DNA from: Octopus sinensis
Lineage: Eukaryota
Assembly: GCF_006345805.1 (NCBI RefSeq)
Contig: NC_043014.1
Coordinates: 4,092,001-4,156,000, forward strand
DNA: 64,000 bases
Direction: 5' to 3'
Shown here: positions 19,128 to 49,463 of the stretch, piece after piece
Position numbering within the stretch: position 1 is the stretch's first letter
Layout: every line of letters starts with the position of its first letter
Made by a program: the position numbers and the translations under genes
The notes under the pieces: model-generated
Seen by the model: only the letters and a program-made list of their open reading frames with translations
The model's database searches: none
Told to the model about the DNA's origin: nothing

Positions 19128-19627
19128 GTGTGGCTGGTGGACAACATTATTCCCATACTGGTGGCGGAAGTAATCTCTTATGTCTACCCAACGATCCCAT
19201 TTGGGCCAATTATACTACAGAAGTTGAAAAAGGTGGTTACATTTTTGGCAGTGAATATCAACTACAGTCATACGACACCAATACCATCTTTTCTTTTGCT
19301 AACGCTAAATCACTTCATGATCACAACGTTCCGTGCGCTGTCTGTTTGACACGACAACCTGCTGTTGTTATGACGTTACCAGCCAGGACAAAGTGTTACG
19401 CTGGTTGGACAACTGAGTATTCGGGATATTTGATGACCGCGCATTATAATCATAAAGGCAGACAAGAATATGTGTGTGTGGATTATGCACCAGAAGCTGA
19501 TCCAGCAGGTTACAGAAACGAAAATGGAGCTACTTTATATTTCGTTGAGGCTGCTTGTGGTTCATTGCCATGTCCACCGTATGTCCATGGTCAAGAATTA
19601 ACCTGCGTTGTGTGCAGTAAATATTGA
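19128..19627 (+). CDS. Paralog 1 exon 4, short-chain collagen C4-like C-terminal domain, ends CSKY*
   Basis: ttctag acceptor; GGGSNLLCLP, GSEY, HNVPCAVC, LPART-C--GW--EYSGYLM, YVCVD, CGSLPCPPY, ELTCVVCSK motifs; TGA at 19625-19627; AATAAA at 19674. Confidence 0.92.
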
Positions 19628-21535
19628 ATAGAAATTAAATTCGGTTCCATATGAAAATATGTCTGTGAATTACAATAAATAACATAAAATTTCAATTGTT
19701 TTACCTAATATTTTCTTTAAAGTATGTCTATCGTTACAATAAACTGTTGTACTAGTTTACAGAAGATATTCAAACAATACAAAAGAAAGCCAGAAATATC
19801 CTCAAAAACAAGAAAAATCTAAATCTGTCGAAATGATTCTAGAAAACATTTTGTAAGATTTCAGTTTATCGTTGAAATAAAATGTTATTTTGTTTAACAG
19901 TATTTTGTCTTCTGTCTCATGATTCAACAAACCCCAAATAAAGTACCACCATAGAATTATATCAGCTTTTCATGCCCAGCCTTAGAAAATCTAATACTCG
20001 ACGCTACTATCTCAGACATCTTGGTTTTCAAATTACAGCTCGGATTCTGACAAGGAGCCATGAACCGCTACATTACTTAGCACAGAACTTAACTGATTCT
20101 TTCAACAACAACCAGATACTTCCACACAATCCATTCTATTTGCCGTTATTTATCAGGAAAGCTTTCCGTTCCATTCCTACCCCATATCTTATAAAACCTA
20201 TTTATTGTCTACTTTAGAAATATCACAAAATGTTCAATTTAAGCTTTCTGAGAATGTGGAATTTACACGATCAATCCTTGAAAAGACAGTATAAATGAGT
20301 ATTGGTCCTGCCAACCTAAATCTATATCACAAAATTCCGACCTCTCCACAAAATAAGATACAAAATGAAACTCGATGCACACAACATACACATCATATAC
20401 TAAACGCTGATATACAAGAATAAGAAATGAAATCAACCAGAAAAATTGCCTCATTTCAGCAGCAGAGAACATCAAATACGACGATTTCTTTCACTCATCT
20501 ACGTAAACATACCAGAACCGAAGAAAGGATGGATCCTAGAAGCTGAATACATTTCATGCGAAACGAATACAACACCCATAAAAGTGAGAGTAAAGAGAGC
20601 AAATATAGTCAGGGCAAGCACGGATGCTGTGTGTAAGAAGGCTGAGATGTTGTGACCGTCACGTTATATCCAATAAGATTCATGACGGTATGTTGGAGTG
20701 TGTCGAATATTTGTTAGATAAACGAAGGTTTCGGTTTACAGCATCAAGCTGCAATAAAGATTAAAGATTATTAATGTTTACTATCCCACTATTATTAGTC
20801 TGATGGGTAAATCTGCATTCGCTTCTCTAGATTACAAATATTTTCTTGGTTGTAAATCGTAAACAATTGCAGAGAATACGGACGCTGGTAGATCTTCAAA
20901 TTAATCTTTTGATTCAGCGGCATAATTAGACAGTTAAAACGACCGCCATGTGTTTAAGCTGTACAGAGCATGCGCAGCTGCATATGCAACCCGCCATTAC
21001 AATAGGAAAAGTTATGGGACTTTGTTGAAATCTGACATGGCTGTAAGATTTATTTTGTAGCTTATTTCAAATTAACCTTATTTCGAGGGCCAACCCGAGG
21101 GTGTTACACACACACACACACACACACACACACACACACACACACTCACACACACACACACACAGAGACACACACACACATATATATATATATATATTAA
21201 ATTAGGTCAAACTATATCTGAGGGGTCTAATATGCTTCATCTAAGAAAATTTAATCATAACTATGGAATTCCGTCGTACATATGCAGTCCACACGGAAGG
21301 TGCACTTGCGAATTGAGTTTCAAATGGGAGACACTGTACCTGTATGTTTTGCTATGATTTATAAAACAAGAAGAAAAGTATTCAAAGCTAGTGATAATGA
21401 CTAGCTAAAAATATGTATGAATGTCATTATTCGGTTTTAATAGAATATTTCTGGCCAACAGAAAGAGAGACGGCTTCTAACTTAGTTCCAAGTATCTTTC
21501 ATTGGAATTTTAACAACATGAACAGGATATTTTTG

Positions 21536-21924
21536 TATGTATGTATGCATGTATGCATGTATGTATATATGTATGTATGTATGTATGTATGTATGTATAT
21601 ATGTATGTATGTAGGTATGCATGTATGCATGTATGTATGTATGAATGTATGCATGTATGCATGTATGTGTGTATGTATGTATATATGTATGTATGCATGT
21701 ATGTATGAATGTATGTATGTATGTATGTATGCATGTATGTATGTATGTATGTATGTAAGTATGTATGTATGTATGCATGTATGTATGTATGTATGTATGT
21801 ATGTATGTATGTATGCATGCATGGATGCATGTATGTATGCATGCATGTATGTATGTATATATGTATGCATGCATGAATGTATGCATGTATGTATGTATGC
21901 ATGTATGTATGTATGTATGTATGT
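21536..21924. repeat. (TATG)n compound microsatellite; second tract at ~22478-22910
   Basis: Direct reading. Confidence 0.95.
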
Positions 21925-22477
21925 CAGGTCACTTTCGAGTGCTACTGGTAAACATGTAACCCAGTACAACCTGTTGCATTGTCGGGTCGTCGGCGACTAA
22001 ACCGGCAACCCCACCAAGCTTGCTTGGTGAGGAGGGAGTTTTTTAGACACCCTGCGGGATGAAAAACAAAACCCGTCAAAGAGCGGAGGAACTCTTGAGA
22101 GTCAACGGCCATCCAATATATGTCTTAAGACTGTATCATGCGCGGGGACATAGAAATATTCGGACTGAATACCCGATCGCGCGGTTAAACCGTTGGGAGT
22201 GAAGGACTCCTAGACTTTGCTAGGGCATCCTTTTGGAGAAGTTAACTCAGGTAACTGGGATAACTCCGATATAAAACCTGCGGCTCAGTGGTTACCGATG
22301 ATGTTGACTTGTTCTTCTTTTCGGAATATGGCTGCTGTTGCTTAGTGACTGGGATTGACACAGTGCACAGCCTTTTCTCACTACAAAAAAAATCTTCATG
22401 CACAGGCATAGCAAGATAATAACATTGATTAAGCTTCGTGCAATGCCCATACTCGATAACGAGGGTGCAGCCACCAA
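21925..22477 (+). mobile_element. Unclassified interspersed repeat, possibly a LINE 5' UTR, within (TATG)n
   Basis: Higher-GC unique sequence (AAACCGGCAACCCCAC, GGGCATCC motifs) between two (TATG)n tracts; no coding motif recognised. Confidence 0.3.
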
Positions 22478-47080: not shown

Positions 47081-47155
47081 ATCCCGGTCTCGGATCATTG
47101 TATACCCGGTGGGGCAGAACAACTTGTCCTCCTTATTCAAGCCTTGTATATGACG
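47081..47155 (+). CDS. Paralog 3 exon 3 (N-PGLGSLYTRWGRTTCPPYSSLVYD-G)
   Basis: tttcgcag / GTTAGT boundaries, 75 nt. Confidence 0.9.
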
Positions 47156-48963
47156 GTTAGTATACTTTATATTTCTGACCTCTCATTCTCTTTTTGTTTT
47201 TTTCTTGTTCTCTTTTTATACCTCTCATTCTCTCTTTTTGTTGCCTCTCTTTCTCTCTCACCCTCTCTCTCACGCACATGCACACACACTCACCCTTTGT
47301 CGGGTTGTCTGACATAAACATTCTCAAATCCTCTTATGATATGTCACGTTTCAAACGTCTATACCTGTAGACTAAACAGACACTACACAAGACTGCTTAC
47401 TCCTTTGTAGGTATTTGGTCAAATCAGAATATTGTATGTTGTCTACTACGGACCAAGTGAAAAGGATGTTGTCTAACCACAGAATATAGATATCTCTACG
47501 ATAAATTACAGACAGGAGCTGGACTAAAAATCCCCCATGGCGATCAAAAATTTCTGGCTGACCAGCTTTGGATTGTAGGTATCAAATACCGAGGCTGCTA
47601 ACTGGTGATCAAGTGTACAGGCTACGGATGGTGGTATTGTACATGAGTGACCAGGACTGAAAAGTTGCCACGTGACTATCATTAACTAGAGTGCCCAATG
47701 ATCGCAGGTGTTGGCTAAATTGAATAGAGTCTATTAGAATTGATGACAGTGACTGTAAACGATTAATGAAATGAACGCACAATGTAGAATGAGGACTGGA
47801 CAAGCCACATACTGTAACTGATGGAAAAAGCTAAGGACTTTATTCATTAAGGAAAATAGAGAGAGACTAAATGTTTGTGAGAGAACACAACAGAGTACAG
47901 AATGCACTTCTATTCTTCTCCGCCTCACCGAAGTCGTCCTATCGCTGAAACCTTGCTCTTTTCATGCACCACATCACCTCATTAATTATCCAGTATATAT
48001 TTGTAAGGTAATTACGACACTTCCAATTCAAAACTGCTGCTACAAACCTCTTCCCCAATCAACCTCACAATCCCTAAAAATGCTCCGAATCTGCTGTCTA
48101 TAAACCATACACGTATCCTTTATCGGTCACCCACTCCGCCGTCCATTCATCTTAAGCACTAAGCCATCACTGAACCTCACAATTTTTCCTCCCACCTCGT
48201 TTCTGTGTATTGCATGAAGTAAAGTCTGTGTGATCATAACGTCTATGTAAGCCTGATTCGTCCGAGTCTACACGAGAGGTTTAGCCACTGACTCTCGTAT
48301 GATCGACTAAACAACATTTCATCGACGGTTACCCACCACTTCTCTGCATCTCGTCGTCTCCCCTATTGTCCTACTCAAACCTCCTACAATTTCCACCATC
48401 CAAAATATATCCGTTCACACGTGAACATCTTTTCCATTTCGGATAAACACGAGTGCATGCGTTATAAAATATCTTTCTATTTCTCCATCTATTGACATCC
48501 ACCGAAAAACACCTACCCCATGCAAACATACATAATAATCCACGTCGTATCCACAAAAACTTACCCGTATACACAATATATATATATATATATAAATGGA
48601 GTTGCATGAAACAATCGTGCCGCATTATCTCTGGATATCCTCGTTGCTTACTACGATATATATACATACATATACATACATATATATATACTTATATATA
48701 TATATATATATATATATATATATATATATATATATATATATATATATAATATATATATATATATGAGAAGGTATATGTACAGTTACGATTCAGCAACACA
48801 CAGTTTACACTCATATAAACACTAACATATATACACCACAATTCGTTCACACGTGACTAAGCATGACTTCTTTTAAGTGAAAAATTGTAATGAATGTTTC
48901 CGTTATTTCGTATATAATTTTGCTTAATATCTTTTTTAATTGATTTATTCTTACTAATTCAAG

Positions 48964-49463
48964 GTGTGGCTGGTGGACAATGGTACGGCGACACAGGTGG
49001 CGGAAGTAATCTCTTATGTCTACCCAACGATCCCATTTGGGCCAATTATACGACAGAAGTTGAAGAAGGTGGTCACATTTATGGCAGTGAATATGAACTA
49101 ACTTTTTACCCAACTAATAAACTCTTTTCTTTTGCCAACGCTGAATCAATTCATGATCACAACGTTCCGTGTGCTGTCTGTTTGACACGAAAACCTGCTG
49201 TTGTTATGATGTTACCCGCCAGGACAAAGTGTTACGCTGGTTGGACAGCTGAGTATTCGGGATATTTGATGACCGCGAGTTCTGTACATAAGGGCAGACT
49301 TGAATATGTGTGTGTGGACTATGCTCCAGAAGCTGATCCAGCAGGTTACAGAAACGAAAATGGAGCTCTGCTGCATATTGTTCAGGCTGCTTGTGGTTCA
49401 TTGCCATGTCCACCGTATGTCAATGGTCGAGAATTAACCTGTGTTGTGTGCAGTAAATATTGA
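48964..49463 (+). CDS. Paralog 3 exon 4, short-chain collagen C4-like domain (full protein 256 aa)
   Basis: ttcaag acceptor, open to TGA at 49461-49463; AATAAA at 49525. Confidence 0.92.

Follow-up and report, generated by a model that had tools for sequence, protein, structure and literature searches.

The stretch analysed here, 64,000 nucleotides of an Octopus sinensis chromosome (NC_043014.1, positions 4,092,001 to 4,156,000; hereafter the window), carries three intact four-exon genes and exon 1 of a fourth. They belong to a large tandem family for which the RefSeq name "short-chain collagen C4-like" is already in use on octopus genes. The genes are arranged head to tail and encode proteins with a spongin-type NC1 domain and without a collagen part, and most of the selected codons lie in predicted loops of that domain. 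The array probably serves as an extracellular binding repertoire rather than as a source of matrix collagens.

Variable patches of the last exon

The last exon (exon 4) is located on the forward strand at positions 19128-19627 in gene 1, 36423-36919 in gene 2 and 48964-49463 in gene 3, in each case behind an AG acceptor and closed by a stop codon. Based on the letters of the window, the first-pass annotation had proposed that the copies diversify in about five short patches on an invariant scaffold. Every amino acid string that it quoted was found as written in the three last exons. Genes 2 and 3 differ by 18 residues and one single-codon indel, giving 19 positions of which 14 are within the patches, and the multi-base codon changes CAT>TGG (codon 6) and CAC>TTT (codon 47) are genuine. 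All ten cysteines are invariant in the three genes, as had been claimed, although nine are encoded by exon 4 itself and the tenth (in RTTC) by exon 3. The 3' flanks of genes 2 and 3 had been called nearly identical; they are less diverged (5.0%, 33/664) than the exon (9.1%), but the stronger description does not hold.

Further members of the family were collected because a test of clustering on the three copies that define the patches is circular. The resulting set of 15 last exons comprised those of the window (three) and of gene 4, six from a 106-kb stretch of the same chromosome (5.24-5.35 Mb), three from other stretches, and two from O. vulgaris. All 15 are intact, and 100 of the 166 aligned columns are invariant. 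Among the ten other O. sinensis paralogues, 25 of 33 patch columns vary as compared with 35 of 133 scaffold columns (hypergeometric p = 2.5e-7), a clustering beyond chance. When 47 unique octopod domains were compared, the columns with the highest entropy were 46, 47, 6, 108, 34, 37, 106 and 8, with 12-13 residue types present at sites 46 and 47.

Patch 1 (QHYSH) is encoded at positions 19142-19156 in gene 1, 36437-36451 in gene 2 and 48978-48992 in gene 3, and contains the selected codons 6 and 8. The second patch proved to be wider than the GYIF originally drawn, covering columns 31-39 (EVEKGGYIF; 19220-19246, 36515-36541 and 49056-49082), and includes selected codons 34 and 37. Patch 3 (YQLQSYDTNTI; 19256-19288, 36551-36580 and 49092-49124) harbors the indel together with selected codons 46 and 47, while codons 105, 106 and 108 are those selected in patch 4 (TAHYNH; 19436-19453, 36728-36745 and 49272-49289). 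Patch 5, given here in widened form (NGATLYFVEAA; 19523-19555, 36815-36847 and 49359-49391), is only weakly variable; codon 136 reaches a posterior of 0.84, and codons 133 and 143 vary. A conserved N-X-T sequon (NYT, codons 27-29; 19208-19216, 36503-36511 and 49044-49052) is found immediately ahead of patch 2 in all but one of the 15 aligned copies, the exception (a5) reading NYTI, so the variable loops may have a glycan beside them.

Selection on individual codons

The ratio of nonsynonymous to synonymous change (dN/dS, omega) by the Nei-Gojobori method (NG86) was 0.44 over all columns, 0.63 in the patches as first drawn and 0.31 in the scaffold, and parsimony counts gave 0.70 for the patches and 0.36 for the scaffold. 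A binomial test on each site's own counts, which has low power, revealed no significant site. Codon site models were written because the whole-exon and patch averages were below one and the per-site tests lacked power. A Goldman-Yang-type model with F3x4 codon frequencies and pruning likelihood was implemented in our own code and applied to the 15 exon 4 sequences on neighbor-joining trees.

Under M0 the estimate of omega was 0.46. The likelihood ratio test statistic (LRT) was 63.8 for M1a against M2a (p = 1e-14) and 68.1 for M7 against M8. M2a assigned 67% of sites to omega 0.047, 26% to omega 1 and 7% to omega 4.4, and the estimate for the selected class ranged from 4.1 to 4.4 across models. 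Codons 6, 8, 34, 37, 46, 47, 105, 106 and 108 had posteriors greater than about 0.9 and, with codon 136, all are within or adjoin the patches originally proposed. About two thirds of the codons are thus under very strong purifying selection (omega near 0.05) and about ten loop codons evolve at omega near 4. The proposal of diversifying selection stands at the level of about ten individual codons with omega above one (near 4 at some 7% of codons), but not for the patches taken whole, which average 0.63-0.70.

Since recombination can produce false positives in site tests, two controls were carried out. When the exon was divided into quarters, each with its own tree, M2a was favored in all four (LRT 7.7, 11.5, 11.9 and 6.3; sum 37.4, p = 1e-5). 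For the other, 40 data sets were simulated under the fitted M1a model with eight segments evolving on independently relabelled trees; the largest LRT among these nulls was 15.6, compared with 68.2 for the real data in the same quick pipeline.

A local mutation hotspot was considered but is unlikely: in columns with an invariant residue, synonymous change was equal within five codons of the hot sites (1.0 changes per site) and elsewhere (1.05). The raised synonymous divergence in the patches is mostly an artefact of pathway averaging over multi-step codon changes.

Placement of the selected sites on the predicted structure

The sites were placed using the secondary structure of an AlphaFold model (mean predicted local distance difference test score 85) built on an alignment of 85 sequences; residue numbers of the O. 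sinensis protein XP_036366810 (P0001) are given in brackets. Sites 6 and 8 (71, 73) are in the loop after the strand 59-69. Two of the loops concerned flank strand 104-108: the one before it contains sites 34 and 37 (99, 102), and the one after it, the loop of lowest confidence within the domain, contains sites 46 and 47 (111, 112). The loop after strand 159-168 holds sites 105, 106 and 108 (169, 170, 172). Nine of the ten sites are therefore in predicted loops; site 136 (200) falls in strand 199-203, and patch 5 is partly within this strand.

The domain is internally duplicated, in the manner of NC1 with its two C4 repeats. No significant match between its N-terminal and C-terminal halves was obtained with BLASTP, while hhalign aligned the profiles of the two halves over 89 columns with a probability of 92.8% (E = 5.7e-8), and the order of strands is mirrored between the halves in the AlphaFold model. 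This alignment pairs positions 5/6/8 with 105/106/108 and 34/37 with 133/136, making patch 4 the equivalent of patch 1 in the second subdomain. The positions of the C-terminal subdomain which match 46/47 fall in the invariant motif CGSLPC. Selection thus targets corresponding structural elements of the two repeats and, in addition, a loop that is specific to the N-terminal subdomain.

Exchange between paralogues

Several tests indicated that the last exons are mosaics of one another. The pairwise homoplasy index test was significant (p = 0.014), the minimum number of recombination events (Rmin) was 20, and all four gametes were present in half of the informative biallelic site pairs. The maximum chi-square method identified a significant breakpoint (p < 0.05) in 28 of 78 pairs of copies, where about 4 would be expected by chance. 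Some of these breakpoints just mark patch 1; others are clear mosaics. Copies a1 and a2 differ at 17 of 38 polymorphic sites to the left of nucleotide 103 and at 8 of 118 to the right, and a3 and a6 at 47 of 117 sites to the left of their breakpoint and 2 of 39 to the right. A further mosaic pair, g4 and a1, involves genes which are approximately 1.1 Mb apart. Patch variants recur in different combinations, TEYYKHKGRH being found with three different variants of patch 1. The flanks are mosaic as well, since gene 1 has the end of its upstream intron in common with gene 4 but not its 3' flank.

Based on these observations, short exchanges by gene conversion or unequal crossing-over reshuffle patch variants among the copies. 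Point substitution is not the only source of the pattern first reported; exchange between paralogues contributes part of it. Among genes 2, 3 and 4 the fourfold-degenerate sites of exon 4 are 13-15% diverged as compared with 6-7% for the flanks, about a twofold difference. Either conversion imported foreign tracts into the exon, or the flanks were homogenized while the exon was kept diverse.

Exons 1-3 of genes 2 and 3 (23850-32234 and 39999-47155) differ by about 7.5 nonsynonymous and 0.5 synonymous changes, both small counts. The synonymous divergence between the two genes is 0.008 in exons 1-3 and 0.26 in exon 4. The 5' part of the units is accordingly of much more recent origin than the last exon, or more strongly homogenized.

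Protein architecture and domain identity

Each gene encodes a product of about 255 amino acids in which a hydrophobic anchor or signal at the N-terminus is joined through a short charged linker to a 190-residue domain with ten cysteines. The exon 1 product begins with MDFAQLSRNISQRY; the next 19 residues, SISSLIAFGVLLVLTIVIL, are uncharged and for the most part hydrophobic. Visual inspection of this hydrophobic stretch revealed no good small-residue cleavage site behind it, for which reason it is probably a signal anchor or an unusually long signal peptide. The linker encoded by exon 2 contains acidic and basic residues and a single KK site.

No Gly-X-Y run was detected in a six-frame scan of the window, apart from one chance match of four triplets in a transposon region, and the collagen repeat is absent from every octopus product, with KPGLGS being a vestige at most. 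The absence of such a run, together with the size of the products and their hydrophobic N-terminus, agrees with the first-pass view that these are not structural collagens. A "short-chain collagen C4-like" protein from amphioxus (Branchiostoma) is 52% identical (E = 2.5e-45) and has a Pfam collagen repeat (PF01391) directly ahead of the shared domain, which makes the octopus genes collagen-less derivatives.

Pfam searches returned no family for the full-length O. vulgaris protein P0009 (E up to 10) or for exon 4 (E up to 1), the collagen IV family PF01413 (C4) included, and a family-profile search of the sequences in PDB found no NC1 chain at E up to 1. In contrast to these sequence searches, a Foldseek search of PDB with the AlphaFold model gave collagen IV NC1 structures as all of the top 35 matches (probability 1.0, E 3.6e-6 to 4e-2), with a template modelling (TM) score of only 0.36-0.41 and a root mean square deviation of about 9 A. 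The label "C4-like" therefore rests on the fold search and on homology to annotated spongin-type proteins. The previously suggested relation to collagen IV NC1 appears to be one of fold, and that to spongin-type short-chain collagens is one of sequence. Where collagen IV has TRHSQT the octopus domain reads TRWGRT, and the HSQ motif is absent. It was concluded that the domain is a spongin-type NC1, but one whose proteins fail the "collagen" part of that family's definition.

Many homologues of 155-190 amino acids without a source name were retrieved from European Nucleotide Archive (ENA) and Logan assemblies, one being labelled "Salmonella sp. s54412", which is probably a mislabelled eukaryotic sequence. 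A collagen repeat is present in few of the named matches, and forms without one may accordingly be common beyond the cephalopods.

Organization of the tandem array

Gene structures were determined by mapping full-length O. vulgaris proteins, e.g. P0009, back onto the window with tblastn. The splice sites are AG/GT throughout, the reading frames are open in all three genes, and all exons are on the forward strand. Exon 1 of gene 1 (<1-111) encodes the hydrophobic N-terminal segment; its first 11 codons precede the window start, it is 97% identical to P0009 by tblastn, and a GT donor follows. Exon 2 (5626-5677) encodes the charged linker NRFISKKSLDDKPDDTP, is bounded by AG/GT and matches residues 49-65 of P0009 at 100%. 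Exon 3 (17037-17111), likewise bounded by AG/GT, contains the start of the NC1-like domain with its first cysteine, and its spliced product corresponds to residues 40-65 of P0001. Exon 4 of gene 1 comprises 165 codons, nine of them for cysteine, and a stop codon.

Gene 2 begins with an ATG and a hydrophobic segment in exon 1 (23850-23993), followed by exons 2 (29409-29460) and 3 (32160-32234), both assigned from tblastn mapping and splice sites; its exon 4 is one codon shorter than those of genes 1 and 3. In gene 3, exon 1 (39999-40142) was located by protein mapping and exons 2 (44706-44757) and 3 (47081-47155) by tblastn mapping and splice sites. Exon 1 of gene 4 is at 51944-52087 and its exons 2-4 are past the window end, exon 4 being that of P0003. 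The remainder of gene 4 was taken from an overlapping locus of the same chromosome (L003, in which a position equals the window position minus 27411), which also contains a fifth gene just past the window end.

Head-to-tail units of exons 1 to 4 were found in every locus fetched, and at least 13 intact last exons are present in five sampled stretches of one chromosome, between about 4.1 and 6.55 Mb. The best database match to the last exon of gene 1 was P0001, at 100% identity; the next matches were about 30 further octopod paralogues with 70-90% identity, from O. sinensis, O. vulgaris, O. bimaculoides and Argonauta. The family has grown by tandem duplication. The last exons of the copies are 9-11% diverged in nucleotide sequence, and their introns are unlike in length and transposon content.

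A near-identical second copy of gene 1 exists elsewhere (XP_036366570, P0127), with six residue differences in the last exon. A short segment encoding SLLDLLCCPETVNIVLPSKT was observed in intron 2 of every unit (7746-7811, 31495-31566 and 46416-46466 in the window). It is used as an alternative 5' exon by the RefSeq models P0001, P0002, P0007 and P0010, and several models with this exon are chimeras across many paralogues, that of P0010 spanning 117 kb and that of P0002 86 kb.

Gene 3 and its orthologue in O. vulgaris

A syntenic orthologue of gene 3 was identified in O. vulgaris (OX597833.1, locus L001). The two are 97.2% identical over 10.5 kb by BLAST with gaps counted, and the background divergence in substitutions alone is 1.64% over approximately 10 kb. 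Exon 4 of gene 3, when compared with positions 18911-19410 of the O. vulgaris locus, differs at 15 of 500 bases (3.0%). By comparison, the 250-base windows on either side of the exon show 0 or 1 difference, and the adjoining 890 bases of intron and 3' flank show one. The exon is thus a local island of divergence between the species even at silent sites (3 of 77 fourfold sites differ). There are six amino acid differences, of which five are in patches, and about seven synonymous differences.

O. sinensis gene 3 has gained Y138H and F139I (window 49374-49379), reading CAT ATT against TAT TTC in the other 14 sequences. Two neighboring codons have undergone three base changes after separation from O. 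vulgaris, in a strand which is otherwise invariant. Conversion from a sampled paralogue was rejected as the source; the changes are unique, and no donor exists among the 14 other copies.

In the O. vulgaris gene upstream of the orthologue (5159-5654 of the same locus) the last exon is in three frames and is annotated as a truncated protein of 163 amino acids (P0137), either because the gene is a pseudogene or through an error in the assembly. The flanks of this gene are about 93% identical to the gene 2 and gene 3 units alike. As the gene is frameshifted and no closer to gene 2 than to gene 3, the array has turned over since the two species separated.

Transposons and simple repeats

Remnants of retrotransposons without long terminal repeats (non-LTR) are located inside the introns, and the tandem units differ in length chiefly because of these insertions. 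Within intron 1 of gene 2 is an open reading frame (ORF) of 528 amino acids with an RVT_1 domain (24712-26298, forward strand). In intron 2 of gene 1 an RVT_1 ORF and a zf-RVT ORF were identified at 10039-10986 and 8609-9757, with a second partial zf-RVT copy 3 kb away at 11803-12609, all on the reverse strand. A 734-residue ORF in intron 1 of gene 4 (61477-63681, reverse strand) gave no Pfam match at E <= 0.001; by eye it has a reverse transcriptase YIDD motif and a C-terminal GIY-YIG-like motif (LIYCIKC...), which suggests a Penelope-like element.

Long, degenerate microsatellites of the types (TGTA)n and (TG)n occupy positions 21534-21924, 38558-39578 and 59272-60737. The first two follow the last exons of genes 1 and 2 at a distance of approximately 1.6-2 kb, and the third is in intron 1 of gene 4. 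They give rise to strong swings in GC and AT skew and to many pseudo-ORFs rich in Cys, Val, Tyr and His, and could be substrates for unequal crossing-over.

Comparison with known systems

One of the closest described families is that of the spongin short-chain collagens ("short-chain collagen C4", Ephydatia type; Exposito 1991 and Aouacheria 2006, as cited in PMC5395295), whose NC1 has ten cysteines and no HSQ motif (PMC5395295). Its C-terminal domain is clearly homologous to the octopus domain (52% identity for the amphioxus member), which also has ten cysteines and no HSQ motif. In place of the Gly-X-Y domain of the spongin proteins, the octopus proteins have the hydrophobic anchor or signal and the charged linker. 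They are also encoded in large tandem arrays with positively selected loop codons, and no such description of the spongin family was found in the literature searched. Collagen IV NC1 (PDB 1LI1, 1M3D, 5NAY) is the only fold matched by the octopus model, and both consist of two homologous subdomains. However, collagen IV NC1 has 12 cysteines and HSQ motifs, and belongs to a protein with a long triple helix in a basement-membrane context; the octopus proteins have neither of these, and show no sequence match to Pfam C4 or PDB.

Of the homologues that have been studied, the nearest are the SP precursors (alpha, alpha' and beta) of the cuttlefish Sepia. They are the three most abundant oviduct-gland transcripts, representing 47.8% of the sequenced expressed sequence tags (ESTs); mass spectrometry detected their products, for which a role as waterborne sex pheromones was proposed (PMC3484142). 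The proteins were taken to be precursors from which several peptides are released by cleavage at internal dibasic sites; that paper makes no mention of collagen or NC1 and discusses neither a gene array nor diversifying selection (PMC3484142). The beta precursor (P0095) matched the octopus domain with E = 5.8e-45 and 52% identity over 98% of the query. Like the octopus proteins, the SP precursors have about 250 residues with an N-terminal hydrophobic signal, a cysteine-rich remainder and no collagen. By inspection, the KR, RR and KK sites of Sepia are replaced in octopus (LNKRVVPC by HDHNVPC, VHRRPQ by VDYAPE) and only the KK of the linker is kept. As the octopus copies are without internal dibasic sites, an intact folded domain rather than a peptide cocktail would be expected. 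The egg-case proteins of cuttlefish (SepECP) belong to an unrelated family. For the octopus family itself, a tryptic peptide assigned to one O. vulgaris member is listed in the ink proteome of that species (PMC10142993), and no literature on its expression, expansion or selection in octopus was found.

By analogy, the array may be likened to conotoxins, snail FREPs and the lectin clusters of natural killer (NK) receptors, which also combine birth-and-death arrays, a cysteine framework, few selected exposed positions and exchange between paralogues. The folds of those systems are unrelated, and the octopus family differs in that its variable positions are mirrored in the two repeats of an extracellular-matrix domain.

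Alternative explanations

In the explanation preferred here, the conserved disulphide-bonded fold would present variable loop tips that set binding specificity, and the array would represent a repertoire of extracellular recognition proteins, whether secreted, shed or membrane-tethered, and not matrix collagens. Gene conversion or unequal crossing-over would reshuffle the patch variants among copies. The most likely setting would be an exocrine or reproductive secretion, because the nearest studied homologues are Sepia oviduct-gland transcripts and a family peptide of O. vulgaris occurs in ink. A number of points weigh against this explanation. The patch averages of omega are below one by both counting methods, and the low-powered per-site test was negative. 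Branch lengths in the site models were optimized under M0 only, and our code contains no model of multi-nucleotide mutations, which can bias omega upward and are evident in the family (TAT TTC to CAT ATT in gene 3). Recombination also inflated the LRT, in that 8 of the 40 null replicates (20%) exceeded 5.99, the nominal 5% cut-off. The gene 3 changes Y138H and F139I could be adaptive or mark the onset of decay. The protein collection contains no entry identical to the spliced product of gene 2 or of gene 3, the Sepia cleavage sites are replaced in octopus, and the putative link between the array and the SP proteins is by homology only. Some of these points would also follow if there were no adaptive diversification at all, with gene conversion, clustered multi-base changes and misfitted trees mimicking omega above one in unconstrained loops. 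We regard this as improbable: even the highest LRT of the null simulations, with their extreme recombination, is less than a quarter of the observed 64-68, the signal was kept in four partitions with separate trees, neutral loops are expected at omega near 1 rather than near 4, and the 12-13 residue types at sites 46 and 47 among 47 domains also argue against it. It is hardly credible that the copies are assembly duplicates or collapsed alleles, which the first-pass annotation had named as a finding that would overturn its reading. Such an origin is favored by the high mutual similarity of the copies only, and against it stand the distance between the last exons, the distinct lengths and transposon insertions of the introns, and the regular array whose order is kept and whose gene 3 has a syntenic orthologue.

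The remaining alternatives accept the selected loops and differ in what these would contact. They might form an assembly code determining which paralogues co-assemble, insulating or recombining oligomers rather than binding outside ligands. The NC1 domain of collagen IV is described as a recognition module directing assembly (PMC5395295), and determines which chains join in trimers and hexamers; the octopus fold matches NC1 trimer and hexamer structures only, the selected sites occupy equivalent subdomain positions as would a repeated interface round a pseudo-sixfold ring, and there are many paralogues that could co-assemble. We nevertheless consider this rather unlikely, given a TM score to NC1 of only about 0.4, the reported lack of the domain-swapping hairpin in spongin-type NC1 (PMC5395295), and the presence of up to 13 residue types at single sites, where interfaces usually co-evolve under constraint. 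A role in reproductive secretion is a fair possibility without being the expected outcome; the octopus proteins would then be counterparts of Sepia SP-alpha/beta, with loops diversifying through sexual selection or species recognition in egg, sperm or mate signalling. It is in keeping with the size, layout and 52% identity of the beta precursor, with the dominance of SP transcripts among oviduct-gland ESTs and the mass spectrometric detection of their products (PMC3484142), and with the frequency of such selection patterns in reproductive proteins generally. On the other hand, the loss of the Sepia KR, RR and KK sites means that the peptide-cocktail mechanism is not transferable, and the listed family peptide is from ink, a non-reproductive tissue (PMC10142993). 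Reproductive secretion does not strictly compete with the preferred binding repertoire but would be one setting for it. The first-pass interpretation, an immune or allorecognition repertoire binding microbes or non-self, is unlikely in our opinion. Tandem expansion, probable secretion or surface exposure, hypervariable loops with omega above one and the shuffling of variants between copies are traits shared with other invertebrate immune repertoires, but the proteins have no immune domain and no link of the family to cephalopod immunity was found in the literature searched.

Implications for the family

NC1 is the assembly and recognition end of basement-membrane collagen, and its spongin-type relatives are treated as matrix proteins. 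The octopus family is unusual in having lost the collagen part, in forming long tandem arrays and in showing strong positive selection on some ten loop codons of a disulphide-locked fold. This combination is the signature of a binding repertoire and not of a structural protein. More speculatively, cephalopods may have turned the NC1 fold into a stand-alone variable recognition module, in which the mirrored loop tips (6/8 with 106/108 and 34/37 with 133/136) and the 46/47 loop would form the binding site, and conversion among dozens of copies would reshuffle the variants. If so, the family would be a previously unrecognised class of diversified receptor or ligand in invertebrates, and the "sex pheromone precursors" of Sepia would be recast as folded NC1-type proteins. 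For these abundant cuttlefish oviduct-gland products, which were published without a recognised fold, the results provide a concrete structural hypothesis. The ten codons offer a small, testable set of specificity positions in animals from which few recognition molecules have been characterised.

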